A stretch of DNA of 64,000 nt from Macrostomum lignano (taxonomy: Eukaryota): positions 160,010-224,009 of the forward strand of contig NIVC01001259.1 of assembly GCA_002269645.1 (NCBI GenBank). Reading direction: 5' to 3'. The notes under the pieces were generated by a model. That model did not search any database and was not told the origin of the DNA. It saw nothing but the letters and a program-made list of their open reading frames with translations. Below, piece after piece: positions 11,301 to 53,698 of the stretch (positions are counted from its first letter, which is position 1; every line of letters begins with the position of its first letter). Made by a program: the position numbers and the translations under genes.

Positions 11301-14300
11301 CCAGATCCCAGATCCTAGATCCCAGATCCTAGATCCTAGATCCCAGATCCTAGATCCCAGATCCTAGATCCCAGATCCTAGATCCCAGATCCTAGATCCC
11401 AGATCCTAGATCCCAGATCCCACGGGAGATAGCAAGCATTGCAGTGCTCAATACTGTGAGGCAGTGCGCGGCCAGTGTGGTGAGACCTGAGCTCACCCAA
11501 CACCATCTCGCGCCAGCATCACAGCAACTCATCCTCGGCGCCTGCGAGCGGCACCTTCAGGCTGTCCTCAGGTGAGCCACCGCTGCCAGCTTCTTCGACT
11601 TCGAAGGGCGACAACTTCGCTTTCGCTTGCGCCGACGCGGCCGACACCAACGAGGTGAGCTGCTCCTCCTCCGCGTCCTGCGGTGCTGTCAGCTGAAACA
11701 GGCATTTCAACAAAGTCGGAAGTTTTGTTGAAATATTTAATACGATTTAGTGAGAATTGCCTGCAGTGACAACTGCCTGCAGTGACACCTGCCTGCAGTG
11801 ACAACTGCCTGCAGTGACACCTGACTGCAGTGACAACTGCCTGCAGTGACAACTGCCTGCAGTGACAACTGCCTGCAGTGACAACTGCCTGCAGTGACAA
11901 CTGCCTGCAGTGACAACTGCCTGCAGTGACAACTGCCTGCAGTGACAACTGCCTGCAGTGACAACTGCCTGCAGTGACAACTGCCTGCAGTGACAACTGC
12001 CTGCAGTGACAACTGCCTGCAGTGACAACTGCCTGCAGTGACAACTGCCTGCAGTGACAACTGCCTGCAGTGACAACTGCCTGCAGTGACAACTGCCTGC
12101 AGTGACAACTGCCTGCAGTGACAACTGCCTGCAGTGACAACTGCCTGCAGTGACAACTGCCTGCAGTGACAACTGCCTGCAGTGACAACTGCCTGCAGTG
12201 ACAACTGCCTGCAGTGACAACTGCCTGCAGTGACAACTGCCTGCAGTGACAACTGCCTGCAGTGACAACTGCCTGCAGTGACAACTGCCTGCAGTGACAA
12301 CTGCCTGCAGTGACAACTGCCTGCAGTGACAACTGCCTGCAGTGACAACTGCCTGCAGTGACAACTGCCTGCAGTGACAACTGCCTGCAGTGACAACTGA
12401 CTGCAGTGACAACTGCCTGCAGTGACAACTGCCTGCAGTGACAACTGCCTGCAGTGACAACTGCCTGCAGTGACAACTGCCTGCAGTGACAACTGCCTGC
12501 AGTGACAACTGCCTGCAGTGACAACTGCCTGCAGTGACAACTGCCTGCAGTGACAACTGCCTGCAGTGACAACTGCCTGCAGTGACAACTGCCTGCAGTG
12601 ACAACTGCCTGCAGTGACAACTGCCTGCAGTGACAACTGCCTGCAGTGACAACTGCCTGCAGTGACAACTGCCTGCAGTGACAACTGCCTGCAGTGACAA
12701 CTGCCTGCAGTGACAACTGCCTGCAGTGACAACTGCCTGCAGTGACAACTGCCTGCAGTGACAACTGCCTGCAGTGACAACTGCCTGCAGTGACAACTGC
12801 CTGCAGTGACAACTGCCTGCAGTGACAACTGCCTGCAGTGACAACTGCCTGCAGTGACAACTGCCTGCAGTGACAACTGCCTGCAGTGACAACTGCCTGC
12901 AGTGACAACTGCCTGCAGTGACAACTGCCTGCAGTGACAACTGCCTGCAGTGACAACTGCCTGCAGTGACAACTGCCTGCAGTGACAACTGCCTGCAGTG
13001 ACAACTGCCTGCAGTGACAACTGCCTGCAGTGACAACTGCCTGCAGTGACAACTGCCTGCAGTGACAACTGCCTGCAGTGACAACTGCCTGCAGTGACAA
13101 CTGCCTGCAGTGACAACTGCCTCCACCGACAACTGCCTGCACTGACAACTGCCTGCAGCTCGGGTCCTCTAGCACAAAGACAGTTCCACACCAACCTGAC
13201 TGTGCTGGGGGGAGCCCTCCGGTATGGTTGCGATGAGCCGCCTTGACGCGCCGCCAAAACCGCCCCCACCGCTGAAGCCGCCGACTTTTCCGCCGCTGCT
13301 GCCGCTGCGAGCTCGGATGCCGAGTTCTGGTGCTGAATGATTCGCCACTTTTACTGAATTCCGAGCTGATTCCAGCATTTTGATTCAATAGTAAAACTCG
13401 TTTCATATAGGACAAAGTGCATGTGAATTCTGATGTACATGTACACTGATGCAAGCTCGCTGCTGTATATGTACACAGAGACAATGTACATTGATACAAG
13501 CTCGCTGCTGTATATGTACACAGAGACAATGTACACTGATGCAAGCTCGCTGCTGTATATGTACACAGAGACAATGTACATTGATACAAGCTCGCTGCTG
13601 TATATGTACACAGAGACAATGTACACTGATGCAAGCTCGCTGCTGTATATGTACACAGAGACAATGTACATTGATACAAGCTCGCTGCTGTATATGTACA
13701 CAGAGACAATGTACACTGATGCAAGCTCGCTACTGTATATGTACACAGAGACAATGTACATTGATACAAGCTCGCTGCTGTATATGTACACAGAGACAAT
13801 GTACACTGATGCAAGCTCGCTGCTGTATATGTACACAGAGACAATGTACATTGATACAAGCTCGCTGCTGTATATGTACACAGAGACAATGTACACTGAT
13901 GCAAGCACGCAAAGTGCTCCGTGACTCATAAGCCTCTACAATAATAAAAGTTTTACGTAAATCTACCCAAGCCATCTTCAGTGCAGATAATTTCCAAATG
14001 GCGACTTCAATTAGCAAAAACAGCACTGATTTGACCCTTAATTTCTCGATCGGTTTAGCTTTAAAAAGACGTTTAGCTAAGACTAAGGGAGATCAACAGA
14101 GAGAGCATTGCAGTAGCAGCATTAATAATGCAACAGACCGCATTGCCGATGCGTGCGACCCTGGGGAGGGATGGACAGGCGGGCGGGCATAAAACTGCAG
14201 TCCCCGCTGGACTCTCAATTATTTACAAAGTAGCCCGACCCTTTTTGGACCAGCAATAGTGACTTTTATAGTAAAGTATGAGCTTGACTAATCGAATGAG

Positions 14301-17300
14301 TAAAACAAAGTTTTTGACTCTGTACCGATCCCTGACCTAGGCACTGGGCCAGCCGACTAGAGCTTTATCCGGTGCACTACTAGTTCTTGTTTAGATTTTT
14401 TGTGTGACAGATTGCGATAATATGGGGCAGAAACAGAGCATTCTTTGGTGCTTTTCAGTGAAAACTGGTGTCAAACAGTGTCTATGGCCTAGGTTGTCCT
14501 ACTGACTTCATCAATCGTGAACTGTCTATGGCCCAGATTGTCTTACTGACTTAATCAATCTGGAACTGTCTATGGCCCAGACTGTCATACAGACTTAAAC
14601 AATCGGGAACTGTCTATGGCCTAGACTGTCCTACTTACTTATTCAATCGGGAACTGTCAGTGAACAGGCCTAGACTGTCCTACTGACTTCATCAATCGTG
14701 AACTGTCTATGGCCTAGACTGTCCTACTGACTTAAACAATCGGGAACTGTCTATGGCCTAGACTGTCTTACTGACTTAATCAATCGGGAACTGTCTATGG
14801 CCTCTAGACTGTCCTACTGACTTAATCAATCAAGAACTGTCTATGGCCTAGACTGTCCTATTGACTTAAACAATCGGGAACTGTCTATGGCCTAGACTGT
14901 CTTACTGACTTAATCAATCGGAAACTGTCTATGGCCCAGACTGTCCTACTGACTTAATCAACCGGGAACTGTCTATGGCCTAGACTGTCCTATTGACTTA
15001 ATCAATCGGGAACTGTCTATGGCCTAGACTGTGATACAGACTTAATCAATCGGTAGAAGCCACCTTTCTGTGCAAAGTGACAGATGAAATGAGGAGTGAG
15101 AGGCAAACTCAGACTCACCCGGCCATGACTCGCTGAGCAGGTCACTTCTGTCGTCACTCTTTGCCCGCCTCAACACTAAGTTATCGGTGTGAGCGATTGC
15201 CGTTGTTTTTGAGGCAATAAAATTCAAATTAATTGTATAACATTATCAGAACGTAGATAACACTAATTAAGGATGCATCCCGTGTAAAAATAACTTAAAA
15301 AATCTCTTATTTCAACGTTTGAGAGGCGGCATGCAATAAATTGGGTGCAATTAAGCTGCCAGGGTCAAAAACTTCATACATTTCATAATTCGCTATGCTC
15401 AATTAAATTTGGAACATGCTTCTGGCTATAGAAAGTACATTTGCATCGAGGTAGTTTATTGCGCAATTTTCATACCTCGCCTAGCCGATGACAGGTTCTG
15501 ATCGTCCGGTGGCAGGTGGCCATTGGGCCTGAGGCTGGCTCTTCGCAATAGTCGGGAGTTCCTGGCTGAAACTGCTGACGGAGGCCCGGGGGATTCGGGT
15601 GAGTGCTGCTGTTGCTGCAGTTGCTGGTGCTGCGGCGATCGTTGCTCTCTTGCTACTGTCCCAAGTGCTTTTGTTGGAAAATAATTTGCACAATCAGATA
15701 GCCATTGAGTTTTAGTTTGCACTTTACAGAAGCACTTCTAGCCTGACAGAGTTTCGTCCTGGGAACCCTGAACCAGTAGGAACTTAAGTCACTCAGCTCC
15801 AGGTGTGTCAGATGGGAATCGGTGATACCGGAGCCTCAGTCACTCAGCTCCAGGTGTGTCAGATGGGAATCGGTGATACCGGAGCCTCAGTCACTCAGCT
15901 CCATGTGTGTCAGATGGGAATCAGTGATACCGGAGCCTCAGTCACTCAGCTCCAGGTGTGTCAGATGGGAATCGGTGATACCGGAGCCTCAGTCACTCAG
16001 CTCCAGGTGTGTCAGATGGGAATCAGTGATACCGGAGCCTCAGTCACTCAGCTCCAGGTGTGTCAGATGGGGATCAGTGGAATTGGAGCCTCAGTCACTC
16101 AGCTCCAGGTGTGTCAGATGGGGATCAGTGGAACCGGAGCCTCAGTCACTCAGCTCCAGGTGTGTCAGATGGGGATCAGTGATACCGGAGCCTCAGTCAC
16201 TCAGCTCCAGGTGTTTCAGATGGGAATCAGTGATACCGGAGCCTTAGTCACTCAGCTCCAGGTGTGTCAGATGGGGATCAGTGGAATTGGAGCCTCAGTC
16301 ACTCAGCTCCAGGTGTGTCAGATGGGGATCAGTGGAACCGGAGCCTCAGTCACTCAGCTCTAGGTGTGTCAGATGGGGATCAGTGATACCGGAGCCTTAG
16401 TCACTCAGCTCTAGGTGTGTCAGATGGGATCAGTGATACCGGAGCCTCAGTCACTCAGCTCCAGGTGTGTCAGATGGGGATCAGTGGAACCGGAGCCTCC
16501 GTCACTCAGCTCCAGGTGTGTCAGATGGGAATCAGTGATACCGGAGCCTCAGTCACTCAGCTCCATGTGTGTCAGATGGGAATCAGTGATACCGGAGCCT
16601 CAGTCACTCAGCTCCAGGTGTTTCAGATGGGAATCAGTGATACCGGAGCCTTAGTCACTCAGCTCCAGGTGTGTCAGATGGGGATCAGTGGAATTGGAGC
16701 CTCAGTCACTCAGCTCCAGGTGTGTCAGATGGGGATCAGTGGAACCGGAGCCTCAGTCACTCAGCTCCAGGTGTGTCAGATGGGGATCAGTGGAATTGGA
16801 GCCTCAGTCACTCAGCTCCAGGTGTGTCAGATGGGATCAGTGGAACCGGAGCCTCAGTCACTCAGCTCCAGGTGTGTCAGATGGAGATCAGTGATACCGG
16901 AGCCTCCGTCACTCAGCTCCATGTGTGTCAGATGGGAATCAGTGATACCGGAGCCTCAGTCACTCAGCTCCAGGTGTGTCAGATGGGGATCAGTGGAATT
17001 GGAGCCTCAGTCACTCAGCTCCAGGTGTGTCAGATGGGGATCAGTGGAACCGGAGCCTCCGTCACTCAGCTCTAGGTGTGTCAGATGGGGATCAGTGATA
17101 CCGGAGCCTCAGTCACTCAGCTCCAGGTGTGTCAGATGGGGATCAGTGATACCGGAGCCTCAGTCACTCAGCTCCATGTGTGTCAGATGGGGATCAGTGG
17201 AATTGGAGCCTCAGTCACTCAGCTCCATGTGTGTCAGATGGGGATCAATGATACCGGAGCCTCAGTCACTCAGCTCTATGTGTGTCAGATGGGGATCAGT

Positions 17301-18501
17301 GATACCGGAGCCTCAGTCACTCAGCTCCAGGTGTGTCAGATTGGGATCAGTGATACCGGAGCCTCAGTCACTCAGCTCTAGGTGTGTCAGATGGGGATCA
17401 GTGGAACCGGAGCCTCAGTCACTCAGCTCCAGGTGTGTCAGATGGGGATCAGTGGAACCGGAGCCTCCGTCACTCAGCTCTAGGTGTGTCAGATGGGGAT
17501 CAGTGATACCGGAGCCTTAGTCACTCAGCTCTAGGTGTGTCAGATGGGATCAGTGATACCGGAGCCTCAGTCACTCAGCTCCAGGTGTGTCAGATGGGGA
17601 TCAGTGGAACCGGAGCCTCCGTCACTCAGCTCCAGGTGTGTCAGATGGGAATCAGTGATACCGGAGCCTCAGTCACTCAGCTCCATGTGTGTCAGATGGG
17701 AATCAGTGATACCGGAGCCTCAGTCACTCAGCTCCAGGTGTGTCAGATGGGGATCAGTGGAACCGGAGCCTCCGTCACTCAGCTCTAGGTGTGAATGGGA
17801 ACTGGTCCCCATCGCTTCTCACCAAGCGCAGGGATTTCCAGCGCCTCCGGCTTCCTTGCAGCGGGCACCTCGTCCGAAACTTCGATGGTGATGTCCGGCG
17901 TGCAGCCTGAAATATTAGCGACAAATTTCTTTACGCACGAATACAAATCAAAATTCTTCCCAAAATCATGGCCAGTTCGGGTCTAGAAGCTTATTTCTAA
18001 GAAAAATCGAGTGCAGCGTCCTGGTACTTCAGTTTTCCATGCCTAGAACCTGTCAACACCGATGGCTGACGCACCTGGGAAGGCGGTCTGTCCCGCTGTG
18101 ACGGCCTCGGGCGACAAGTCGAGCTCTTCGCTCACCGACGGCGTCTCCTCGCCGGAATCTGAGCAGCTCAGCTGGTGCTCGGAGCCGCACCCGTTGCCGC
18201 CGCCGCCGCTGATGCAACCGCCGTCGCCGTCGCCGTCGCCACAGCCGACGATCACGGCACCGGCAGTCTGCTTGAGAGCGTCGTGCGCTCCAACCAAAAC
18301 CCGCTTCTTCCTCTTTGGCAGCTTCAGCCGGGCCTGGGCGTGCGTGTAGTACAGGGCGAAGTTGTTGACAATGATTGGCACTGGCAGGGCGATGACCAGG
18401 ACGCCGCTGATGGCGCAGACGCCGCCTACAATGTAGCCTGGGCGGCGGCGAGAGAGGCGAAGACGAGATTGCGGATAGTTAAGGCGGAGTTAGAGAGAGA
18501 T

Positions 18502-18590
<89 letters not shown>

Positions 18591-21500
18591 TTCTCCCTTG
18601 AAGAGCTTGTGGCAGGTGCTAATGCCGAGCGGGGAGTTATTACCCAACCCCCGAGCCACTTCCCTTGGGGGGGGGGGGGAGTGAAGCATAGCGGGAAAAT
18701 GGAGCTCAGAAAGGGCGATTGGGGAGCCCGGGATTCCTAATGGCGGCTGGCGCAATCAATTTCTGTTAGCAGCCGCCCGGGTGTCAGTGAAGTGGACGGC
18801 CAAATTGCGACGTTGAACGCGGCGGAAAGTTCTCGTGGCTTGCCGGGGTCGGACTGGGAGATTTGAAGGGCTCGGCTGAGGCTGCCGGGGTTGCTGGGGT
18901 AAAGTCTGTCTGCTCATTCTATTGCCAGAGTTGTCGGATTCCAATTTGTGGATACTGGATAATCGGGAGAGCCGATCGGTAAAGGATTGACTGTGGATTA
19001 ACAAATACCGGGTTATCGAGGAGATTTTACAGGTGTCGGATTATCGAGGAGATTTTACAGGTGTCGGATTATCGAGGAGATTTTACAGGTGTCGGATTAT
19101 CGAGGAGATTTTACAGGTGTCGGATTATCGAGGAGATTTTACAGGTGTCGGATTATCGAGGAGATTTTACAGGTGTCGGATTATCGAGGAGATTTTACAG
19201 GTGTCGGATTATCGAGGAGATTTTACAGGTGTCGGATTATCGAGGAGATTTTACAGGTGTCGGATTATCGAGGAGATTTTACAGGTGTCGGATTATCAAG
19301 GAGTTTTACAGGTGTCAGATTATCGAGGAGATTTTACAGGTGTCGGATTATCGAGGAGATTTACAGGTGTCAGATTATCGAGGAGATTTTACAGGTATCG
19401 GATTATCGATAAGATTTTACAGACGTCGGATTATCGAGAGACTTTACAGGTGTCGGATTATCGAGGAGATTTACAGTTGTCGAGTTTTTACCATATCGAG
19501 GTGAATTAACCGACTTACCTGGCAGCGTCCTTGGCACCATATCACCGTAACCAAGCGTTGTCATGGTAACCAACGCCCACCAGAATCCGATAGGGATGGT
19601 TCGAAACTCGTTTACGGGCGACTCGACGAACTGTTCGCAGATGAAGATGGCGGTGCCGCACAGGATGACGAAGATGGCGAACACGGTGCCCAGCAGGGTC
19701 AGCTCCCTGGACGAGGCCTTCATGGTGTGCACCAGGATTTTCAACCCGGAGAAGTGCCTGGTCAGCTTGAAGATGCGCAGAATTCTGGGCACCTTGAGAA
19801 TCTGGTGCACGATAACGGCTGATTCCGGCGGCACAGCGAACGAGACGCAGGCCGTTGCCACAGCAACCAGGTCGATCCAGTTTAGCGCCGATTTGAAAAA
19901 TTCCGGCTTCGACGGGCAGAAGACAAGGCGGGCGGCCAGCTCCAGGGCGAAGTAGGCCGTCACCGTGATGTCCACCGCGTGCACCGCTGGCCGCGGCTGC
20001 GTGTACCGGAGACAGTCAGAGACCATCAGGCGGCTGCAGTTCATGGCGCCGGCGCCGGGCCGCGGGATTCGAGCCTCGGGCAGCGTCTCCACCACCAGGG
20101 CGATGATGGAGGCCAGGATGAAGAGAACGGATACTGTGGCCAGCGCCTGGAGGTCAGGGGTTTTGATGTGGTCGTTTTTTATGTGGTCGGTTTTGGGGTT
20201 GTTGGTTTTGAGGTGGTCGGTTTTGAGGTGGTCGGTTTTGAGGTGGTCGGTTTTTGATGTGGTCGTTTTTTATGTAGTCGGTTTTGGGGTTGTTGGTTTT
20301 GAGGTGGTCGGTTTTGAGGTGGTCGGTTTTGGGGTTGTTGGTTTTGAGGTGGTCGGTTTTGAGGTGGTCGGTTTTTGAGGTGGTCGGTTTTGAGGTTGTC
20401 GGTTTTGATGTGGTCGTTTTTGAGGCTGTCGGTTTTGAGGCTGTCGGTTTTGAGGCTGTCGGTTTTGAAGCTGTCGTTTTTGAGGCTGTCGGTTTTGAGG
20501 CTGTCGGTTTTGAGGCTGTCGGTTTTGAGGCTGTCGGTTTTGAGGCTGTCGGTTTTGAAGCTGTCAGTTTTGAGGCTGTCGGTTTTGAAGCCGTCGGTTT
20601 TGAGGTGGTCGGCTTTGAGGTTGTCGGTTTTGATATGGTCGGTTTTGATATGGTCGGTTTTGATGTGGTCGGTTTTGATGTGGTCGGTTTTGATGTGGTC
20701 GGGTTTTAGGTGGTTGGTCGTTTTTTGAGCCAGTCTACTTTGGCAGGCTACTAGTAATGGATCTGAGATGGTTAAGTCATTCGAAGTGCACAAGCTAACT
20801 AATTATATTACAGCACATTATCAAGGACTCAATCAATTCCTTCCATTCTGTTTTCAACTTATCGGCAGAGTGTGTAGGATTGCAGAAGACTCCAAATTTG
20901 GATGAGAATGGCCGACTAATACGTCACCCAAGCGAACGGATGCTCCGGTCTACGGGGTGGGGATTAATTTCGCGGAGAGGGTCGAGGAGAAATAAGGAGC
21001 CCATTGCTGCCATCTGCGCGCTGGCACAGTTTGGGAACTCAGCCGCCGCGCGCCGCGCTCCCTAGGGAAAAAATGCGAAGCCTCAATCTGTGTCCCATCT
21101 CCGCTCCCCCGGCCAAAGGGGTGTTGCGGGTCCCGAAAAATGATTCTGCTTATCCAGTCTCGCTGTCGCAATTCTTTCCCGCATTCACGGCCGTCTCTGC
21201 TTGTTGACGCTCTTTTTTAAAATGCCCGTCTTCCTCGGGGTCAGTGGGGATTTCATTTCTGGCCGTAGTTTGACTTGATAAATTCTTCCCATTTTTCGCA
21301 CGGTTATTTGCCCGCTCTATAAAAATGGCTGGGCGGTACATAAGAGATTAGTTTTACATCACAGGTGACCAGCCTGTGATCAGTTGATCTGTGATCAGTC
21401 TATCCTGTGATCAGTCTATCTTGTGATCAGTTGATCTGTGATCAGTCTATCCTGTGATCAGTCTATCCTGTGATCAGTCTATCCTGTGATCAGTCTATCC

Positions 21501-24500
21501 TGTGATCAGTCTATCCGGTGATCAGTCTACCCTGTGATCAGTCTATCCTGTGATCAGTCTATCCTGTGATCAGTCTACCCTGTGATCAGTCTACCCTGTG
21601 ATCAGTCTATACCGTGATCAGTCTACCCTGTGATCAGTCTATACTGTGATCAGTCTATCCTGTGATCAGCCTACCCTGTGATCAGTCTACCCTGTGATCA
21701 GTCTACCCTGTGATCAGTCTATCCTGTGATCAGTCTATCCTGTGATCAGTCTATCCTGTGATCAGTCTATCCTGTGATCAGTCTATCCGGTGATCAGTCT
21801 ACCCTGTGATCAGTCTATCCTGTGATCAGTCTATCATGTGATCAGTCTACCCTGTGATCAGTCTATCCTGTGATCAGTCTACCCTGTGATCAGTCTATCC
21901 TGTGATCAGTCTATCCTGTGATCAGGTCTAAAACAAGTCACAATGCTACCTCATAGCACAGCACAGTGCAGATGCCCCTGTGTCACATGTGGTGAGAAGG
22001 GCTAATTGAATTACCCTATCAACAGCCCAGCGTAGAAATCCTAGGCCTATACTATAACGACCCTAGGGATGCGAGAGTTTACCCTCCCTAGTTCTCCGGC
22101 CTGCCGCCCAGCTCATTAATTATTAATGAGCCCCCGGGTCGGGTATTCCGCCAGAGTTTAACACTTAGCTGGCCAATAGCCGATGGCTCTGATCTACTGC
22201 TGCTGCGCCGCGCCAGCACTGGGCGAAGGAAAACTTCACCATTTTTCTCCAATCTCTCCTCTTCCCAGCCTCAGAGTCCTCAGCATCATCTCGTTCTTAT
22301 CTCTTATCCCTATCTCATTCTCTTTGGTGGAGGTCTGGGCGCGGGGAAGCGGCATGCATAATGCAGATTCGGTCGCCCCCAGCAGCTGATGGCCCGATTC
22401 GTCTCTGTCGCAAGCCGCAGATGAAGACTCGCCGCCAGCACTGGCCCCAAACTGGTGGCTGATTAATTACTCCAAAGCCGAGTCGGCGGGGGTAAACATG
22501 GCCAGTAAGCTGACACAACCGCGCCGGCTCAGCTAGCTCCCGTATTTATGAGCCGCGTCGGTCAGGTGTGCGAGGTGAGACACCTTTGATCGGCCGGACA
22601 CCCTTCTGTCTGACGCTAGCATAGGTGTACAGTTTACTGACTTTGCACTGATTCCTGCGGTGCTTCGCCTATAGTCATGCCTTGTTATGCTGGGTGCAAG
22701 GAGGAAACCACATTAACTTGAGTTAGCGTCATTCTTGAACAAAAACTAAGCGATGAAAACAAGTTTGTTATGACTAGCACCCACCCCTACAGGCCCGAAC
22801 CCACAGCTGCACCCAGCCTGAGCCCACAGCTGCTCCCAGCCTGAGCCCACAGCTGCACCCAGCCTCAGCTGCACCCAGCCTGAGCCCACAGCTGCACCCA
22901 GCCTGAATCCACAGCTGCACCCAAACTGAACCCACAGCTGCACCCAGCCACAGCTGCACCCAGCCACAGCTGCACCCAGCCTGAACCCACAGCTGCACCC
23001 AGCCTGAACCCACAGCTGCACCCAGCCACAGCTGCACCCAACCTGAGCCCACAGCTGCACCCAGCTTAAACCCACAGCTGCACCCAGCCTGAACCCACAG
23101 CTGCACCCAGCCTGAGCCCACAGCTGCACCCAGCCTCAGCTGCACCCAGCCTGAGCCCACAGCTGCACCCAGCCTGAATCCACAGCTGCACCCAAACTGA
23201 ACCCACAGCTGCACCCAGCCTGAGCCCACAGCTGCACCCAGCCTGAGCCCACAGCTGCACCCAGCCTGAGCCCACAGCTGCACCCAGCCACAGCTGCACC
23301 CAGCTTAAACCCACAGCTGCACCCAGCCTGAACTCACAGCTGCACCCAGCCTGAACCCACAGCTGCACCCAGCCACAGCTGCACCCAACCTGAGCCCACA
23401 GCTGCACCCAGCTTAAACCCACAGCTGCACCCAGCCTGAACCCACAGCTGCACCCAGCCTGAGCCCACAGCTGCACCCAGCCTCAGCTGCACCCAGCCTG
23501 AGCCCACAGCTGCACCCAGCCTGAATCCACAGCTGCACCCAAACTGAACCCACAGCTGCACCCAGCCTGAGCCCACAGCTGCACCCAGCCACAGCTGCAC
23601 CCAGCTTAAACCCACAGCTGCACCCAGCCTGAACTCACAGCTGCACCCAGCTTAAACCCACAGCTGCACCCAGCTTAAACCCACAGCTGCACCCAGCCTG
23701 AACCCACAGCTGCACCCAGCCTGAGCCCACAGCTGCACCCAGCTTAAACCCACAGCTGCACCCAGCCTGAACCCACAGCTGCACCCAGCCTGAACCCACA
23801 GCTGCACCCAGCCTGAGCCCACAGCTGCACCCAGCCTGAACCCACAGCTGCACCCAGCCTGAACCCACAGCTGCACCCAGCCTGAGCCCACAGCTGCACC
23901 CAGCCTGAACCCTCAGCTGCACACAGCCTGAACCCACAGCTGCACACAGCCTGAACCCACACCTCCCAAGCTGAACCCACCTTGCCGGGCCCGCCAACGC
24001 CGGTACCCTCGACCTCGAGCAGCGCCCAGACCCTCGGCCGGACCCGCTGCCACCTGCCCAGCTCCGGCCCGGCGGCCTCCTCGATGCCAAACCGCCTGGC
24101 GGTGTCGCCGGGCGCGTCCTCCTCGCCGTCGTCGGACAATTCGCCGCCGTTGAGCTCGGCGAGGGTCTCCTGAGCGTCCCGGTGAGTCCGGTAGGTGGTC
24201 CAGCAGCAGGACTCCATCTGTTTCTCGTCGATGCCCCAGTAGGCCAGCTCCTCCTCGAACATGGGGCCGCAGATGTCCATGGGGGTGTGCAGCCGGCCGG
24301 TGCGGTAGTAGTTGAGAATCATGGCGAACACGCCGCTGTGCCGGTCGAAGAAGTACTCCCCGGTGTCCGGATCGAAGTCGGCGCTGTTCACCGAGGTGGC
24401 TTCGGCCAGCCAGGCCAGCCGGGTGTCCGGGATGTTCTGCAGAGTGGATTTGTAAGTCTCGAAACGGACTCCGCCAACATTGATGACGATTCGGTTCTCC

Positions 24501-24565
24501 GGCGGCCGCGACTGGCCGCAGCCGCCGCCCTGGCGCAGCGTCACCGAGGTTGCTCTGCTCACCAT
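8348..24565 (-). CDS. Shaw: Voltage-gated K+ channel, Kv3/Shaw subfamily (long isoform ~810 aa; short isoform ~739 aa ending at 11519)
   Basis: Exons (-): 24565-23981 (T1: [20 protein letters not shown], Zn motif HX5CX20CC), 20146-19519 (S1-pore: [30 protein letters not shown]), 18437-18075 (S6: [16 protein letters not shown]), 17906-17823, 15667-15476, 15175-15119, 13332-13196, then either 11692-11519 (stop) or 11692-11555, 9416-9347 and 8526-8348. All junctions are GT-AG and phase-consistent. An upstream in-frame ATG at 24616 is also possible. The core is certain; the C-terminal exons are less so. Confidence 0.92.
9961..11420. repeat. 14-bp satellite (agatcccagatcct)n built from alternating GATCCCA/GATCCTA heptamers
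   Basis: Near-perfect array of ~1.45 kb; same family as 58965-60437. Confidence 0.97.
11757..13160. repeat. 16-bp minisatellite (ctgcagtgacaactgc), ~87 copies, Kv3 intron
   Basis: Almost homogeneous array filling the intron between exons 13332-13196 and 11692; source of the 461-778 aa spurious ORFs. Confidence 0.97.
13433..13905. repeat. 45-bp minisatellite with 90-bp higher-order dimer
   Basis: Units alternate ...cactgatgcaagc... and ...cattgatacaagc... variants. Confidence 0.93.
14480..15052. repeat. ~44-bp minisatellite (gaactgtctatggcctagactgtcctactgacttaatcaatcgg)
   Basis: About 12 degenerate copies, ending just before the donor of the 57-nt exon. Confidence 0.9.
15788..17790. repeat. 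51-bp minisatellite, Kv3 intron
   Basis: Unit gtcactcagctccaggtgtgtcagatgggaatcagtgataccggagcctca, ~39 copies. Confidence 0.95.
18505..18588. repeat. (GA)n microsatellite
   Basis: Pure dinucleotide run. Confidence 0.95.
19008..19495. repeat. 28-bp minisatellite (tttacaggtgtcggattatcgaggagat)
   Basis: Direct tandem copies ending ~25 bp from the pore-exon donor. Confidence 0.93.
20160..20705. repeat. 15-bp minisatellite (gaggtggtcggtttt and variants)
   Basis: Graded variants starting just past the S1-exon acceptor. Confidence 0.93.
21372..21924. repeat. 16-bp minisatellite (ctgtgatcagtctatc)
   Basis: Direct tandem repetition. Confidence 0.93.
22797..23980. repeat. ~23-bp minisatellite (cacagctgcacccagcctgaacc)
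   Basis: The array abuts the T1-exon donor (23980), and its unit contains the donor-adjacent gtgggttcag on the minus strand. Confidence 0.95.
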
Positions 24566-24702
24566 GGCGGCTGCAACCAACTGTGCTTTGCTGGCTGAGC
24601 TCAGACTCTTTCGCATTACGGCCGCATCCGGCACTGCTTTGGCTAGGTTTCCCACCCGCCATTCCTCTGCAGCACCTATCCAGATGCGGCATCAGCAGCT
24701 GA

Positions 24703-24884: not shown

Positions 24885-26075
24885 TCTTCCATCTATGCTG
24901 AGCCTCCCAATTCCCATCAGGAGGATAATCTCCCCTTCATGCTGCTGAGCCTCCCAATTCCCATCAGGAGGATAATCTCCCCTTCATGCTGCTGAGCCTC
25001 CCAATTCCCACCAGGAGGATAATCTCCCCTCTATGCTGAGCCTCCCAATTCCCACCAGGAGGATAATCTCCCCTCTATGCTGAGCCTCCCAATTCCCACC
25101 AGGAGGATAATCTCCCCTCTATGCTGAGCCTCCCAATTCCCATCAGGAGGATAATCTCCCCTTCATGCTGCTGAGCCTCCCAATTCCCACCAGGAGGATA
25201 ATCTCCCCTCTATGCTGAGCCTCCCAATTCCCATCAGGAGGATAATCTCCCCTTCATGCTGCTGAGCCTCCTAATTCCCATCAGAAGGATAATCTCCCCT
25301 TCATGCTGCTGAGCCTCCCAATTCCCATCAGGAGGATAATCTCCCCTTCATGCTGCTGAGCCTCCCAATTCCCACCAGGAGGATAATCCCCCTCTATGCT
25401 GAGCCTCCCAATTCCCATCAGGAGGATAATCTCCCCTTCATGCTGCTGAGCCTCCCAATTCCCATCAGGAGGATAATCTCCCCTTCATGCTGCTGAGCCT
25501 CCCAATTCCCATCAGGAGGATAATCTCCCCTTCATGCTGCTGAGCCTCCCAATTCCCACCAGGAGGATAATCCCCCCTCTATGCTGAGCCTCCCAATTCC
25601 CATCAGAAGGATCATCTCCCCTCTATGCTGCTGAGCCTCCTAATTCCCATCAGAAGGATAATCTCCCCTTCATGCTGCTGAGCCTCCCAATTCCCATCAG
25701 AAGGATAATCTCCCCTTCATGCTGCTGAGCCTCCCAATTCCCATCAGGAGGATAATCTCCCCTTCATGCTGCTGAGCCTCCCAATTCCCACCAGGAGGAT
25801 AATCTCCCCTCTATGCTGAGCCTCCCAATTCCCATCAGGAGGATAATCTCCCCTCTATGCTGAGCCTCCCAATTCCCATCAGGAGGATAATCTCCCCTTC
25901 ATGCTGCTGAGCCTCCTAATTCCCATCAGAAGGATAATCTCCCCTTCATGCTGCTGAGCCTCCCAATTCCCATCAGAAGGATAATCTCCCCTTCATGCTG
26001 CTGAGCCTCCCAATTCCCATCAGAAGGATAATCTCCCCTCTATGCTGCATGAGCCTCCTAATTCCCACCAGGAAG
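24885..26075. repeat. 44/47-bp minisatellite
   Basis: Unit gctgagcctcccaattcccatcaggaggataatctccccttcatgct mixed with a shorter ...ctctat variant. Confidence 0.95.
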
Positions 26076-26729
26076 ACAATCTCCTCAATCAGAAACCAAA
26101 AGCATTGTTTAGTCAAAAGCTTGAGTGCTTGAACTTTCTCTTAACACGTGTAACATAAAACGTATAATGATGATAGATAATAGCAACTAGATAACCATAT
26201 CAGAATATTAGCAAGAATAATATTAATATTAGCAAAAATACGCACTTTGCTAGTTGTTTCATGATGAAACACGAGAGTAACAACAATTACATAAGCAAAC
26301 GGAGCATTATTAACAAAAGTTCACGTGCACTTTTAAATGTGCAAATCAATATTAACAAACGATTACGTACAACGTTAAATAATAGAAATAAAAAAGTAGC
26401 ATCAAGACAGGTAAACAATAAAATCTGAGTTCTCCTACCATCAGTAATATGAAAAGCGCAACAGAGGAATAATTAAAACGAGGTGACTTCTGGTACTGTA
26501 GGATAAGCACGGTGGCTCTTGACTGGTTATTGTTGACGCTTATTGCTTGACTCCCAGCTTCCTCTAGTTGCCGGGGGGGGGGATTAACGCATTGCAAAAG
26601 GTATCATGCGCATTAAAAACTTGAACACGTGCGTGCTAGGGCGCGGTTTAATTAAAAAAACTATTCAACACAACGAATGTTATTAGAGATGAATATTACA
26701 AACTGATAATGAGGGAGGCCAACAGGCGG

Positions 26730-29700
26730 TCACCCGTCGCCGTGGTAGAGATTCAGCTGTGGCAGGAACAGTCCCGGATGAGACGGCGGCAGGCGGGGTG
26801 GCGGAGCCCTGCCGGATCCCACAGGGATGTTGGCGGCCGCAGCTGCCGCCGCTGCCACGGCTGCCGCAGTCGATTGAGGCGCTGAAAAGGCCGGCAGTCC
26901 GCTGCCGCTGCAGGAGGTGATCGCGGAGTGCGACAGCGACGGCGTGGGAGCGCCCATCGGATTGGCGATGATGACAGGCACCAAGGTGGCTGCCGGTGAC
27001 TGCAGGAAGGGCAGCGACGGGAGCGGGGCACCGCCACCACCGCCACCGCTGCTGACGCCGCCGCTGACGCCGCCAAATCGCTGCGGGCCGCCGCCAAGCG
27101 GAATGGGCGGATGCGACAGGCCAGGATAGGACGGCATCTGCATGGGCGGGGCGCCGTAGCAGGGCGTCTTCTGTGGCACCCACATTGACTGCGGCGGCGG
27201 CGGCCCGGCCGGCTTCTGATGCTGCTGGCGCGCTGCTTGCTGAGGAAACTGCGTGTTAGGCGGCTGCGGAAAATGTGGCGGCATCGACACGGAGGATGCA
27301 GCTGCCGCAGCTGCAGCCGCCGCCGCCACAGCCGCCTCCCAGGACGCCGGGTGATGCCGGGCAGCGGCCCATTGCTGCAGGAAAGCCGCCGGATCCTCGG
27401 CTGCCGACGGAGGAAACGGCAGGTGCATTAACGGGTGCTGATGCGGCGGAAACAGGCGGTGATGAAGCTGCTGATGCTGGTGCAGCTGGTGCAAACTGTG
27501 CAGCTGGTAGAGCTCGTGCTGGCTAACGATCGGCGGTGACACTGGCTCGTTCTCGATTTTAGTCACCGGCGCGGCGGGTGAGATGGTCTCCAGTCTCAGC
27601 TGAAAGGGCGACGAACGCGCCGGCGGTGGCGGCGAAGTCGGTTGCGCCGGCGGCGGCGGCGGCGGCGGCGGCTTCGCAGAAGCAGCGGCAGTAGCGACGG
27701 CAGCCGATGACGTCACCAGGCGGTAATCCTGATCGTGAGCCTGGCTGAGCACATTCTCAATTACGCTGTCGATTGAGTCCCTCGTACCAGCGAAGCTTTC
27801 AAATGACGAGGCAGACGCGGCGTCCGTTGCGGTTGCCGCTGTCACAGTGGCATCTGGCGCATCGGCAGCTTGATTAGCAGCTGCAGCTGCGGCGGCATCC
27901 GCCGATGTTGTCCCGCGCCGCTGCGTCGGGTTGGCCGGCTCAACTAGCCTCGTTTTGCGCGGCCGGCCCCGCTTTCTGGGAAGCGCCACAGCCGACGGAA
28001 GCGACGGCGGTGCCTGAGTTGCCGGCGATGGAGGCAGCGGAGGTGGCGGCGGAGGCGGCGGAGGCGGCGGGGTTGGAGGCGGCGACTGAGGATGCGGCGG
28101 CGACGCCGGCGACACGTCGGAAATCTCCAGCTTGGGGGTCGCAGGCTCCAGTTTGGGTCGCTTCTTAGGTGGCCGGCCTTTCTTTCGTCGACCATGTCGA
28201 CGCTTTCGCGACGGAGCCGCCGCGGCCGCTGCCGCCACCGCCGCTGCTCGAGCTGCCGCAGTTGATGGCGGCTTCTTGCGCCGCTGTTTGGCTGCCGTTG
28301 TCGCTGCTGCCGCCGCCGCCGCAGCGGAGGACCTGCTTGACAGGCGATTATTTGCGGCGGTGCCGCTTGCCGCAGCGGCATGTCGCGTCCGCTTGGGCCG
28401 TCCGCGGCCGGCGCGACTGACCTGCTCATCAGTGTCGCTGGCTTCGCCGCTGCCGCCGCCGTGGCCACCACGCTGGCGGCGCAAGCAGCGCTTGTCGACT
28501 TTGACACGCAGCTGCAGGTCGCTGATGCACTCCTGCTCGGAGCGGCGGCCCAGAGTGCGCAGTTCGCCTTTGCGCTTCGGAGCTGTGAAATTTCAAGTGA
28601 AAAGAGGCTCTTTGTTCAGGGTGTCCATCAGAGAGACAGGACTCAAATAGAGGGTGTCCATCAGAGAGACAGGACTCAAATAGAGGGTGTCCATCAGAGA
28701 GACAGGACTCAAATAGAGGGTGTCCATCAGAGACAGAACTCAAATAGAGGGTGTCCATCAGAGAGACAGGACTCAAATAGAGGGTGTCCATCTGAGGGCA
28801 GGATGTCCGCCCTTTAGAGAGAAACTTACACTGGGTATCAACAGTAGAATGAGGTTACGGAACTCCCTAAAAGACGCTAGACTCGAATAGCAAGTGAAAA
28901 GTAGACAAGCTCAAGCAGCTCACCCAAAGACTCCTGCCGGCTGGCGTGCCGATTAACGTGGTAGAGAGGGTGCTTGCGCCGGCAAAAGAAGACTTTGGTG
29001 CCGGCCGGGCACTGCGCCAGACAGCCGTCACCAATATAGCCAAGCACCTGTTCGCGACTCCAGCCGTACAGGCAATGGGCCGCCGAATAGCGTTGAAGAC
29101 GATTGAATGAGCTCACTGACATTACTAGAACGTTTGCCTTGCTCCTAGCATCACGCTTGCCTGTGAGTAGAGTTTTAATCAAGTTAAAATTTTACGGATC
29201 ATGCGCGCCTATCTACTTATAGTAGGAAAGAAAGTTTTCACACTACTTATTTTTATCTCTAGTAAATAAAATAATGATAGATTAATGCCAAGCAACAGCA
29301 CAGCTGCTTACCGTGCGACGAAGATGCCAAAAAATCGGGTAAACTGTAGCCTTGCTCAGCCCAATTGCCAGTTCCATTGCCGCAAGCGTCTGGCGCGATG
29401 CACTTAAAGAAGTCTTCAAGCGTTAGGGTCAGCGGCTTAGGATGACGAAGAACTTCAAAATCAACCTGTAGTAGGGTAGTTGATTGTGAAAATATAAAAA
29501 CTACAGTAATCGTGACAGTCATCGAATTCACATTTATGCATATTTTCTCCGCTATTATCCTGTAATTTAAAGCACAGAAAAACCCTTTTTAACCCGCTAA
29601 TCATGATAAAAATAAAAATTGTGATAATAATGATAAAATATACTGACAGTTGTTTCAGCAAAACCAGCATTTAGGCCATATGAAAAAGTCTTGAAACTTA

Positions 29701-31062
29701 ACAAAACTATTTATAGTTTAGCTTATAAAAACTAAACTAAAAAGCCATTAGAATTCTTTCGGCATGCGCTGTACATTTTGCCAAGGGGGGTGGGTGGGTG
29801 CAGGGGGTTGCGATTTCATGAAACTTGTCATATTAAGTGCGCCGGCGCACAAGCCCCTCCCCCCTCCATTGGCCCACCCCCAGATTCTCATTGCTATCAA
29901 CCCCTACCCCCACCACCCGCCACCCCATTTTAAATCAAGCCTCGGTGGTTAGTTTTATTTGGGACGGGCGTTTTGAGAGAGGGGAGGTTGGCACTGGCAC
30001 AAGGTGCGCTCATTCATTCTCTTTTCCTCCTTTTTTATTAACTAAAGTCGAGAAGTGACCCCCCCCCGCAAAGGAAGGGAAGGAGAGAGGAGGGCGAGGG
30101 ATGGGGAGGGGGCGGGGAGAGAGGAGGGCGAGGGATGGGGGGGGGCGGGGAGAGAAAGTCGTAAGGAAAGAGAGACTTGTGCAAAGAGCGTCCGTATCAG
30201 CTGTGTCAGCCACCCCAGACGCCTCTCCATTCTCTCTCTCCCCCTCTTATTTCTTTAGTTGTTAGTAGATTGGCTTTGGCTGCGACCGAAAAAAACAGAT
30301 ACTAATAAAGAGCGCGTACGCACTACGCATTTGGGACAGAGACATAGAAATAAACCTTTGCCTGCCGTGTGGGCTGGCTGAACGTAAGGGGAAATGAAAG
30401 AATAGCTTTTTTGTTAAGTATGATTTGGAGGAATCAAGATTAGCTAGTGAAAAAAATATACTCATTTCTATAGGGGGTTGACAATTCAGATTTAGTACTG
30501 AACTTATTTTGTTAATTCAATCATTCTACAAAAAAGAAAAGAAAAAGGAAAAGGCAATGAAAATGTAAAAGAGCGTTTATGTACCGTTTTACATGACCAA
30601 ATATTTCTAAATTGACTGTACTCGTATAGTTGCCAACAGAAGTTTAGAGAAAATTAATGCATGGAAGTACACACAGCAGTCTGTTGAAAAATATTAACTA
30701 GAAAACAATAAAGCACTCACCGGCGGCACGAAGACCCGGTGAAAGCCCACGCAGACAACGCCAGACGCAGAGATTGGCGCGTTCACCCGTTTCAGTTTTA
30801 GGCCGTAATTAGCATCACGTGACACATAGCTGGTGGGGTAGAATACGCTGACGCTGGCCATCCGGCTGATGGCTCTGTCCTGCCGCAGGCGCCGCTGTAC
30901 AGGAATGTACAAGGCCTCTAGTCTGAGCAGGAAGCACCGGCCGGCCTTGCTCAAACTGGACCAGAAGCAATCGCCAATAGAGACTCGACGACCTGGGCCG
31001 CAGCTGGCGCTGGCAAAGTAGATCTCCGAATCGTTGCTGCTCAATGCGTCCTCGAGCTCCAT
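26730..31062 (-). CDS. BAH-domain / AT-hook chromatin protein, ARID5-related N-terminus, ~839 aa
   Basis: Exons (-) 31062-30787, 29465-29312, 29160-28924 and 28582-26730 join in phase (2520 nt). The N-terminus (RRVSIGDCFW...ASVSVFYP...EVL...LTLEDFFKCI...NVLVMS...KVFFCR...APKRKG) parallels the recalled ARID5B BAH region (RILSLGDFF...VKLEDLVKW...NVIVLS...ILYCR...APNLKG). AT-hooks RGRPKR, KGRPPKK and RGRPRK are followed by an Ala/Pro/Gln-rich tail. Confidence 0.8.
28617..28800. repeat. 33-bp minisatellite in the last intron of the BAH gene
   Basis: Unit agagggtgtccatcagagagacaggactcaaat, ~5-6 copies. Confidence 0.9.
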
Positions 31063-34000
31063 TGCTGGCCACCCGGATTGGCGCTTTAAGCTCTCTTGGG
31101 CGAAGCCTAAAATATGCGGGCGCCCGGCGTATTAACCTATCAAAGTTACCAGCTGCTTCATAGCTTTCAGCGTGTAAGAAAGAGTTCAGGAACAAAGTCT
31201 CACCTGGGGTCAACATAATTTTTGACAATTATCAAGTATAATATAACTAGCTTATCTTATTAGACGAATTCATGTGATATTATGCTCATGCATAAAAAAT
31301 CTTAAATCAGAATAATAGTTGATTTTCAATTTTCTGAGAAAAAACGCAAGCATATTAAAGCTGTCATATTTATTGTCTATGGCATTCAGCCTAATGGCCC
31401 AGTCAGAGGCTATAAATTGTTTATTGAATACGATTTGATTAAAATATGCATCGATCCATCATTTCTCACTTATTCTTTCAACTCTAAAAGCATACATTCT
31501 CTTTTGGTTTAATGAATGAGATCTCTTGAGAATGTAGATATAGATATAATGCAGGCATTAAAACTTGGAAAATCTGTTTTCTAAATGTTTTAAAAAGTGG
31601 GCATTCAATAATTTTCAGCTATAATAGTTACTGCCAATTACTAAACCTGCTATGCATAGAGATTTTTCTACCCCCTAATCTCCTACTTCTCCAATAGTTA
31701 GCAGCTATGACAGAGGCTAGCGAGTTCAATAACTGTGTGTGCCCATGCTCACACAAGCAATATTGGGAAGGGAGATGGCTTTTTTCATGTTTTTATTTCT
31801 ATATCACCCAATTTCTCTCCCCCGCTCAGCCTCCCTGCAGAGGCATACAGAGGCCGTACAGTGAGTGCATTGCCGAACACGCGTAGGGAAAAATACACAG
31901 ACAGCAGCAAACTAGACTAGAGACACAGGGCAAAGGAGCGAAGCGCGGGTAAAGGAGGAATAAGGAAAGAAATGTTTCACTACCAGCCCCACTCTCCCCT
32001 CTTCTTCCCTTATACTTCTTCTCTATCCCTCCACACAACCCATGTGCTGATCCACCAACCCCCTCACTAGATCGCCCCAACACAACTAGAAAAGCAACTC
32101 CCCATGCATGGAATTGATTTGTTCACTCAGTCTAAATAGGGGGAGAGGATAGGGTAACTGTATATAATGCGTTCTTATGTAAGTATTTGTAGGGACTATC
32201 GCAAAATTATTTGCTTACAGTTGGGGGGGGGGGTGAGTGCGTGCAGAACCGGGAGGGAGAGACAGTTGATGCACAAGTATACAAAACTTTCGGAGTCAAT
32301 GATCCGCAGCTGCTACTATAGCGAGACAAAACTTGAATGCTGTTACTGCTGCCTGCTAGGTGAAATTATATTTGGCTCACTGTTATGTAAAACAGAAATA
32401 CGGGAGCTTTACTTAAAATGAGTGGCCATAGTAATTAAAACACTACTTGACAAAAATAAATGCCATCCTATAAAATTCAGGAGGCCTCTGAATAAGCAAC
32501 TCACTTTCTAGGGGTGTTTTATTAGCGAACTCGAATTGTTATTCAATTTCAGATGATCAAAGTAATTCTACATGGTGCGGAGCAGACTATACTATATCAA
32601 AACAACAGATAAAATATGTAATTACGCTCGTACGATGGACTACTTACAAATAACATTTAGGATAATTATGAAAGATCGAAATTCGAAACGCGGGCTTAAA
32701 AGTTGCTACATTATTATTTTTAGTTTATATATAATTAACTTATTTTCTTGTTCCTTTTTACGACTATTAAAGATTTTAGTTAGCTACATACGAGATTGGT
32801 CATTGACATTGCTATTACTATTTATTAATTGTTTAAAGCGCCCAAAAACTACAAGGCTTACATAGTGTAAAGCACACGATTGGCTGAAGTCTCATTTGGC
32901 TCATATCATAGCCGTCAAGCCATGCGTTCTGTACGGCCTATGGCCACAGCCCCAGCTGTAAAGTAAGGGGGTGGGGGCTGCCAGTCTGTAAATGTACATA
33001 AACCCGCTAGGGAGGTGGGGTTGGGCCAGTGTACAAGACGAGAAGAGGCGGAGAGAGGCTAGTTTTTCACTCCAGTTTTGCGGGCCGTCCTGACACCTAG
33101 AGTTCTATAACCGCTCGCTCCCCACCCCGCCAGGCCCACCAGAGGAAGAATCGAGCAACTCACGTGTGCGTTTGCAGCCCTCCCCTATTCGTCCAAGAAC
33201 AAGCGCAGGCTTTCAATCTTTTCCGTCTCGTTCTTCTATCTCTTCTCAAGCCAGTATGGAACGGGGCTCACTTGTATAGCCTTTTTAGGCCTATAGAGGT
33301 TCTAATACTTTATTAGATTCTAATGTTTTATTAATTAAACAGTTATGCCTCAACAATTACACCTGTGACTGTGATTTATTCAACAGTGGCACGGCTGTCT
33401 TATGCTGAGGATGGCGATATTTAATTGGTCACGGACGATCTCGAACTAATTTTTAAATGGGTCATAAATACTGAGTTTATTGCTCTAATTATTCAAACTT
33501 CCCCAACACTGCTGATAAGAGCAGTATAATTTTAGATGGGAAATGACCGCAATATTTTATTACACTCTATATGATGTCCAGACAATACCATGACCACTAA
33601 CTTGCTGATAACATCTTCAGAATTTACAAAGGATACGTACTCGCAACATTACAGTACTACATTTAGTTATTATAATCATTACCATTACAATTATTGCCAA
33701 CATTTATGAAACTGAAAATAACAGAAAATTCTCAAAACTAACAGCATTTTTTGGCTTTTAGCTGCATGTATTCTTATACGATGTATTGAAATGTGCATGC
33801 AAGACAGAATAAATAAACAATGCAGAATTGTCATCGGCGTCGCATCCCTACAAATCTCTTTACGAAGCTACTAAGCTTAAGCTAGTACTCGTAGTTAGAC
33901 AATTTGAACTGGCTATAATATTGCTTCAATCTTGCTCGGCTTGTTAGCCAGGCCTCTATATTCAAATCGCCATTTTTCTTTCCCTGCGTTACATACATCT

Positions 34001-47876: not shown

Positions 47877-47898
47877 ATGGTTTCCCCTAGTAGCAGCT

Positions 47899-47951
<53 letters not shown>

Positions 47952-53593: not shown

Positions 53594-53698
53594 GGCCGGC
53601 TTCTCAGTTGCCTGGTTGCTTCTTCCCTCTTTCGAAAAATGCAAGAGTTTTCTCTTCAACAGTGAGAAGGCAGCGAAGGCTGCATGGGGATGCCAGGC

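Follow-up and report, generated by a model that had tools for sequence, protein, structure and literature searches.

The gene Mlig012642.g1 of the flatworm Macrostomum lignano lies on the minus strand at positions 26730 to 31062 of a 64,000-nucleotide stretch of contig NIVC01001259.1 (positions 160,010 to 224,009 of the forward strand; GenBank assembly GCA_002269645.1). We call this stretch the window, and all positions below refer to it. Mlig012642.g1 probably descends from ARID5 (ARID5B/MRF2-like), having kept a BAH-type module and AT-hooks and lost the ARID domain. The retained N-terminal module of ~245 amino acids would comprise a BAH core and an ARID5-specific extension ending in L-APxxKG, all extremely diverged. 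The ARID-coding exons would be gone, and everything past APKRKG is encoded by one exon, specifying a presumably disordered tail of ~600 amino acids. An initial annotation made from the sequence letters had proposed this architecture (an ARID5-type BAH region with AT-hooks and no ARID), and it is supported by a profile match, intron positions, the hooks, and searches for ARID.

A gene model built from splice sites contains four GT-AG exons on the minus strand (31062-30721, 29465-29312, 29160-28924, and 28582-26730). Together they form an uninterrupted coding sequence of 2586 nt for a protein of 861 amino acids. The exon count and outer coordinates are exactly those first proposed; the product, put at ~839 amino acids, is longer. 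The deduced protein is 100% identical to GenBank PAA70197.1 (UniProt A0A267FAM4), which comes from the same contig and is labeled "hypothetical protein BOX15_Mlig012642g1". As the GenBank annotation of M. lignano derives from a genome-guided transcriptome-sequencing (RNA-seq) assembly with TransDecoder open reading frames (ORFs) (PMC5730564), the model made from splice sites only coincides with a transcript-based one. Mlig012642.g1 is a real, expressed gene, already cataloged and uncharacterized; a literature search on Mlig012642 or planarian ARID5 found no publication. Its features are as follows.

30721..31062, minus strand: exon 1, residues 1-114; putative and very diverged BAH core (N-terminal half of the ARID5-type module); start codon ATG at 31062, 72 nt downstream of an in-frame stop; donor CCGCCG|gtgagt, phase 0.
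29312..29465, minus strand: exon 2, residues 115-166; predicted end of the BAH core (FEVLRHPKPLTLTLEDFFKCI...W149), within the significant hhalign match; acceptor ctactacag|GTTGAT; donor CGCACG|gtaagc, phase 1 in a Gly codon.
28924..29160, minus strand: exon 3, residues 166-244; predicted ARID5-specific C-terminal extension of the BAH fold (NVLVMSVSSFNRLQR ... KVFFCRRKHPLYHVNRH); donor CTTTGG|gtgagc, phase 1.
26730..28582, minus strand: exon 4, residues 245-861 and TGA; APKRKG, the basic AT-hook region, and an Ala/Pro/Gln/His-rich tail; acceptor tttcacag|CTCCGA; a single open exon of 617 codons.
28566..28582, minus strand: (A)PKRKG, residues 245-250, remnant of the family motif LAPxLKGRPRK; a phase-1 intron divides the Ala codon.
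28389..28409, minus strand: AT-hook core 1, GRGRPKR, residues 303-309.
28158..28184, minus strand: AT-hook-like core 2, KKGRPPKKR, residues 378-386, inside a basic cluster resembling a nuclear localization signal (NLS) (SRKRRHGRRKKGRPPKKRPK).
27954..27977, minus strand: AT-hook core 3, RKRGRPRK (canonical), residues 447-454.
27747..27776, minus strand: tail motif SIDSVIENVL, residues 514-523, in common with the M. lignano paralog A0A1I8GKP9.
26647..26652, minus strand: ATTAAA hexamer resembling a poly(A) signal, 78 nt past the stop; weak alone, it fits a terminal exon.

Profile-profile comparison linked the protein to ARID5. We gathered the family with the N-terminus of human ARID5B (a query 100% identical to database entries) and with a second search based on an invertebrate profile, collecting members from vertebrates, Ciona, molluscs (Lottia, Liolophura, and Ruditapes), ticks, a mite, and many insects. 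Against an 18-sequence ARID5 profile, hhalign aligned residues 117 to 256 of the flatworm protein with a probability of 75%, an E value of 2.5e-5, and a score of 41. The real score stands about 8 standard deviations over the scores of 200 residue shuffles (mean, 15.0; standard deviation, 3.2; maximum, 27.6), and the reversed sequence scored 18.7. With an invertebrate-only, full-length ARID5 profile, the match covered residues 118 to 253 (probability, 85%; E = 6.3e-6; score, 53.8), and across ARID5 profiles the E value for residues 117 to 256 ranged from 6e-6 to 3e-5. The aligned blocks pair FEVLRHPKPLTLTLEDFFKCI with ARID5 DEVLAVSEKVVLRLEDLVxWI, NVLVMSVSSFNR with xVxVLSYPxYCRYR, KVFFCRRKHPLY with RVLYCRDTFDHP, and L-APKRKG (residues 244 to 250, at the exon 3/4 junction) with L-APxLKG. 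By hhalign, the ARID5-specific extension (VxVLSYPxYCRYR ... RxLYCRDTFxHP ... L-APxLKG) is therefore present in the M. lignano protein. A MAFFT alignment with 30 ARID5 N-termini, independent of hhalign, was colinear over the whole module and left nine columns invariant in all 31 rows (Y75, R82, G87, E118, D132, W149, S180, R186, and C225). The initial annotation had likened the first ~230 residues, through APxxKG, to ARID5B; the likeness is borne out for residues 117 to 256 and for APxxKG, and exon 1 taken alone gives no significant sequence match. In the second half of the module, M. lignano and human residue numbers are equal (N175, S180, R186, C225, and A245 of APxxKG) despite ~20% identity and compensating indels upstream.

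The introns carry the same signal. Intron 1 of the flatworm gene is in phase 0 (VPP|VDFEVL), intron 2 is in phase 1 within the Gly166 codon, nine residues ahead of NVLVMS, and intron 3 is in phase 1 within the Ala245 codon (L|APKRKG). For comparison, we mapped the ARID5B-like protein of the clam Ruditapes philippinarum directly onto its 32-kb gene, where the introns fall in phase 0 at HGE|DEI, in phase 1 in D171, 12 residues ahead of VVIMTY, and in phase 1 in the Ala codon of L|APNLKG. Vertebrate and insect introns were inferred from genomic fragments that read through splice sites. At the first intron, the reading is ...HGE and then V (GT, phase 0); at the second, it is ...ADLG and then KYDL, that is, G|GTAAGTATGA in phase 1; and at the third, ...DEF precedes G, D, or A, whose codons all begin with G, the outcome predicted for a phase-1 intron in a GCN codon. 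All three phases agree; the third position is exact, and the other two, which adjoin indel-rich stretches, differ by no more than 2 residues. These shared introns, the exon 1/2 boundary included, point to common descent and are hard to explain otherwise.

Several results weigh against the descent of Mlig012642.g1 from ARID5 with loss of ARID, among them the scope of the ARID searches, which is given with those searches below. Pfam hmmscan of the full protein returned no family at E ≤ 10, and phmmer with residues 1 to 284 matched none of the PDB sequences. When phmmer was run exhaustively over 1.84 billion representative proteins, all matches came from M. lignano; beyond the query itself, the one match was the paralog fragment A0A1I8GKP9 (P0002), which has no GRP hooks. 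A word-indexed search with residues 1 to 284 found no homologs, although the tool never retrieved M. lignano entries, including the query's own, and the lack of flatworm matches therefore says little here. The claim that the protein has no recognizable relative outside M. lignano is therefore based on the exhaustive phmmer search, the stronger of the two, and it is consistent with the lineage-specific character first ascribed to the gene. Exon 1 (residues 1 to 116) scored 15.0 against an 18-sequence profile of the ARID5 N-terminal half, with 44 of 200 shuffles as high, and 15.6 against a 121-sequence profile, with 14 of 200 as high. The near-invariant LYFLPEDTPxGRxxHGEDEV is mostly gone, broken by an insertion of ~28 residues, and only about 6 of 16 invariant family columns are kept. 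The best local match of exon 1 falls at the expected colinear site (GPGRRVSIGDCFWSSLS versus GxxxxLxLGEFFFVRC), and the BAH-core signature LGxFFFV ... CIxELQLLW ... LYFLPExTPxGRxxHGEDEV finds colinear weak matches (GRRVSIGDCFW, CFLLRLEALY, and ASVSVFYP) at shuffle-level scores. The putative BAH core of exon 1 rests on this colinearity together with an AlphaFold model for which an ARID5 alignment served as the guide.

At the family level, the N-terminal module of ARID5 is, as judged by profiles, a BAH domain: searched against PDB, the family profile matched the BAH domains of TNRC18 (1e-5), BAHCC1 (6e-5), and DNMT1 (2e-4). The N-terminus of ARID5B has been described as a BAH domain with a family-specific C-terminal extension (PMC9077328), and the core in the human protein spans residues 34 to 108 (bioRxiv 10.1101/2025.10.17.683040). 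The Pfam BAH model (PF01426) did not match the M. lignano protein at E ≤ 10, a test of low power because the model reaches E ≤ 0.01 in only 3 of 30 bona fide ARID5 N-termini. AlphaFold run without an alignment gave an unusable model, with a predicted local distance difference test score (pLDDT) of 29. Given a 31-row ARID5 alignment, it reached a pLDDT of 79 to 89 over residues 1 to 55 and of ~80 over residues 117 to 140; the mean was 56, with the insertion and the sequence-significant extension poorly modeled. When the guided model was compared with PDB by Foldseek, the top ~48 matches were all BAH domains (DNMT1 BAH1, TNRC18, BAHCC1, ORC1, ZMET2, and PBRM1), with E values from 5e-3, a probability of 1.0, 73-column cores, and root mean square deviations of 2.2 to 3.5. 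The same structural neighbors have been reported for human ARID5B (PMC9077328). Since the ARID5 alignment supplies the fold, this result indicates compatibility and not proof, and we infer a BAH fold for exon 1 on that footing. Conservation is only loose at the residues reported to contact HDAC in human ARID5B (N87, S88, D89, E92; helix 181-193).

The likeness to ARID5 might then be spurious or convergent, and the gene might encode a Macrostomum-specific, largely disordered AT-hook protein with an N-terminus of novel or non-BAH fold. Such a protein would fit the absence of ARID5 matches in single-sequence and Pfam searches, the nonsignificance of exon 1, and a model that is good only when guided by ARID5 sequences, but it would not be expected to score so far over its shuffles in profile-profile comparison, better still with the invertebrate profile, nor to match colinearly up to the same L|APxxKG end, and convergence does not explain why three of three introns agree with those of clam and vertebrates. 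This explanation is already disfavored, and we consider it quite improbable.

The searches for ARID covered the protein and the 64-kb window. Pfam ARID (PF01388) did not match the protein at E ≤ 10, and hhalign of the tail and of the region past APKRKG found no match to full-length invertebrate ARID5 including ARID. In six-frame translation of the window, hmmsearch with a hidden Markov model of ARID5-type ARID reached an E value of 2.2 at best and tblastn one of 0.11, inside the T1 exon of a downstream Kv channel gene, both at chance level. Most of the gap between the stop codon and this Kv3-like gene is taken up by a 47-bp satellite (24896-26084). The earlier statement that no ARID exon lies between 26730 and the Kv3 gene thus extends to all six frames of the window. 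Downstream of the APKRKG position, at least seven additional exons follow in the clam, the ARID-coding ones among them, whereas the flatworm gene has its one 617-codon exon.

ARID was present in every reasonably complete invertebrate ARID5 that we retrieved (chiton, clam, mayflies, hemipterans, beetle, and ticks), and fish members also carry it; mollusc, arthropod, and chordate ARID5 proteins all keep ARID. The ARID-less architecture is therefore not the invertebrate norm, a possibility that the initial annotation had itself raised. Two ARID-less insect "ARID5B-like" models (Cydia, P0126; Callosobruchus, P0135) were considered as precedents and rejected because they are broken or chimeric, containing segments in duplicate or a fusion to a transposon.

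Elsewhere in its genome, M. lignano may have a canonical ARID5 or an independent ARID gene. ARID could be encoded by an alternative 3' exon (for example, from G|GTGACC at the stop), by a fission gene, or by a canonical BAH-plus-ARID paralog of which Mlig012642.g1 would be a side copy. The genome is recently duplicated and redundant (PMC5730564), at least one diverged paralog exists (A0A1I8GKP9), an older gene model (A0A1I8I2V8, P0004) reads through into the Kv gene, and the ARID search took in only the 64-kb window of the genome. Yet the RNA-seq-derived model stops at the TGA at 26730, with ATTAAA 78 nt beyond; exon 4 runs unbroken from the end of the BAH module to that stop; and no ARID-like peptide was found in any frame of the window, including the 26.7 kb downstream. 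We regard an ARID encoded elsewhere as unlikely. The older model (1096 amino acids) is joined to the Kv gene via a frame-shifted read-through, a fusion that looks like an artifact of an earlier assembly. It also has 19 extra N-terminal residues (MLTPGFAQESLKRQSGWPA) from an upstream ATG at 31217; in the window, this ATG and a small intron of ~95 nt (31100-31217, minus strand) could supply MLTPGFAQESLKRQSGWPA, and the GenBank start is at 31062.

The motif [RK]GRP[RKP] occurs three times in the protein (residues 304, 379, and 449) versus 0.015 expected, and none of 20,000 shuffles reached three. The three AT-hooks and the long low-complexity tail of the initial annotation are both there: hook 2 (KGRPP) is a weaker variant, all three lie among NLS-like basic clusters, and Ala and Pro make up 19% and 17%, respectively, of residues 261 to 861, which include a stretch rich in His and Gln. 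The earlier suggestion that AT-hooks replaced ARID does not hold. In mollusc, mite, and vertebrate ARID5 proteins, a conserved hook (LAPxLKGRPRK) directly follows the BAH module, and some have another after ARID. The conservation of this hook between molluscs and mammals makes AT-hooks an ancestral trait of ARID5. In M. lignano, the KGRPRK hook right after L-APxL has lost its GRP core (the sequence there is LAPKRKGELRTLGRR), and the three other hooks lie downstream. Tick members also deviate at this site (ERGRQRKR).

The hookless paralog fragment A0A1I8GKP9 shares 62% identity with Mlig012642.g1 over a 98-residue block (residues 173 to 270), and AT-hooks may be dispensable in this Macrostomum subfamily. 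The tail motifs SIDSVIxNVL (residues 514 to 523) and LE(T/A)ISP (residues 575 to 580; ~27576-27593, minus strand) occur in the same order in the paralog and in none of the ARID5 sequences retrieved; both are candidate short linear motifs. In the BAH extension, a Cys/His cluster (C212-x3-C216-x8-C225-x3-H229-x3-H233-x3-H237, residues 212 to 237; ~28945-29023, minus strand) is mostly kept in the paralog and is not found in other ARID5 proteins; it is possibly a lineage-specific zinc site.

A second genomic copy, g2 (NIVC01004490.1, 8676-12972), has an intact ORF of 859 amino acids with all splice sites kept, consistent with the known recent genome duplication of the DV1 line (PMC5730564). The exons of the two copies are 99.6% identical, with 11 differences (5 synonymous and 6 nonsynonymous codons), too few for the ratio of nonsynonymous to synonymous substitution rates to be informative; the introns differ by 16 substitutions and a few indels. 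This pair bears on whether the gene is an ARID5 relic drifting toward a pseudogene after whole-genome duplication, transcribed and with no selected function. The extreme divergence of the conserved ARID5 signature would suit decay, as would a low-complexity, GC-rich tail with long ORFs in several frames and the location of all six nonsynonymous differences in that tail. However, both ORFs and all splice sites are intact, and residues 1 to 260 differ by two synonymous codons and no nonsynonymous one. In A0A1I8GKP9, too, the 98-residue block and the two tail motifs are preserved amid otherwise diverged sequence, which argues for purifying selection on the module. A decaying duplicate seems to us very unlikely.

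If Mlig012642.g1 descends from ARID5, what is known of the human protein offers a guide to its role. The BAH region of human ARID5B is reported to bind HDAC1/2 in complex with MIER1 and C16orf87 (bioRxiv 10.1101/2025.10.17.683040) and has no methyl-lysine aromatic cage (PMC9077328). Both points weaken the initial view of the flatworm protein as a chromatin reader. In the cage region, the alignment puts F44, F74, and Y75 near human C53, L75, and F77, in a register that is unreliable in the exon 1 half. By descent, the flatworm module most likely serves protein docking more than the reading of histone marks. By analogy with human ARID5B and its HDAC1/2 and MIER1 partners, it would provide a docking surface. 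The AT-hooks would make low-specificity minor-groove contacts with AT-rich DNA, the low-complexity tail would add further interactions, and module and hooks together would tether a corepressor or another partner to chromatin without ARID. Nuclear localization, DNA binding, and an HDAC-type partner are all inferred for the M. lignano protein. We raise only tentatively, as a rather doubtful extension, that the sole surviving ARID5 descendants of Macrostomum are ARID-less BAH and AT-hook adaptors that bring an HDAC/MIER-type corepressor to AT-rich DNA. The suggested link to the satellite-rich genome fared poorly: the 27 tandem arrays of the window have GC contents of 0.33 to 0.67, mostly with A/T runs of ≤5, so local satellites are not obvious AT-hook targets.

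The closest known systems are the long isoform of ARID5B (MRF2/Desrt) and invertebrate ARID5B-like proteins (R. philippinarum, P0131; Liolophura, P0127; a tick, P0103). The flatworm protein resembles them in the ~245-residue extended BAH-type module with its L-APxxKG end, the three intron positions and phases, the basic AT-hook-type region after the module, and the long, presumably disordered C-terminus in a large last exon. It differs in having no ARID, in the ~28-residue insertion in a degenerate LYFLPEDTPxGRxxHGEDEV, in its ~20% identity, and in the change of the ancestral hook from LKGRPRK to RKGELR with three new hooks downstream. Canonical BAH proteins (DNMT1 BAH1, BAHCC1, TNRC18, and ORC1) are the best structural matches of the guided model and profile matches of the ARID5 family; unlike ARID5B, their BAH domains read H4K20me or H3K27me3/H3K9me3 via an aromatic cage. 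AT-hooks and BAH occur in one chromatin protein in ASH1L/Ash1 and others. ASH1L, a SET-domain methyltransferase, also contains bromo and PHD domains, with BAH in a C-terminal position; the M. lignano protein has no SET, bromo, or PHD domain and would be related to it only at the level of the BAH superfamily. HMGA proteins (~100 amino acids with an acidic tail) and the Drosophila satellite binder D1 (~10 hooks) have no BAH domain. The M. lignano protein is like them in its several RGRP hooks and its presumed disorder, and binding to AT-rich repeats is possible, although the local satellites are not AT-rich.

The window as a whole is eukaryotic DNA with a GC content of 0.47, of which ~21 kb (33%) lies in the 27 distinct tandem arrays, with periods of 14 to 58 bp (for example, 9961-11420, 11749-13158, 15787-17793, 24896-26084, and 58957-60435). 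The same 14-bp unit, ATCCTAGATCCCAG, is found at both 9961-11420 and 58957-60435. Within Mlig012642.g1, intron 3 contains a 33-bp tandem repeat (28618-28803; 5.7 copies) and intron 1 contains a 34-bp G/A-rich repeat (30082-30155; 2.2 copies), and both produce spurious ORFs on the two strands. Directly downstream lies the Shaw/Kv3-like potassium channel gene (18000-24655, minus strand), its introns full of tandem arrays, with a T1 (BTB_2) exon in the ORF at 23744-24655 (E = 3e-30) and an Ion_trans exon at 19403-20095 (E = 5e-31). An ORF at 47877-48338 (plus strand) begins with poly-Gln and encodes a homeodomain of the TALE type (Homeobox_KN, E = 3.5e-8; Homeodomain, E = 2.4e-7); it probably represents one exon of a TALE homeobox gene. 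A 170-amino-acid ORF at 53147-53659 (minus strand) has a hydrophobic N-terminus resembling a signal peptide, is otherwise rich in Ala, and matches nothing in Pfam; it may be a gene for a secreted or neuropeptide-like product or an ORF arisen by chance in GC-rich sequence. An Rfam scan of the window gave no match.

The gain from this gene is modest in that domain loss is common in flatworms and the sequence was already in public databases. For gene annotation, the locus shows that conserved intron phases and positions can reveal the homology of fast-evolving flatworm genes where profile searches yield only "hypothetical protein". ARID5B is a leukemia-risk and neurodevelopmental gene, and the link of its BAH domain to HDAC1/2-MIER1 recruitment is recent. 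An ARID-less descendant with the BAH extension, in an animal amenable to transgenesis and RNA interference, would offer a test of the role of the BAH domain without ARID DNA binding, and the same gene could show whether AT-hooks suffice for targeting. If ARID-less adaptors are indeed the sole survivors of ARID5 in Macrostomum, they would constitute a natural experiment in which the conserved and essential part of ARID5 is the BAH docking module and not ARID.

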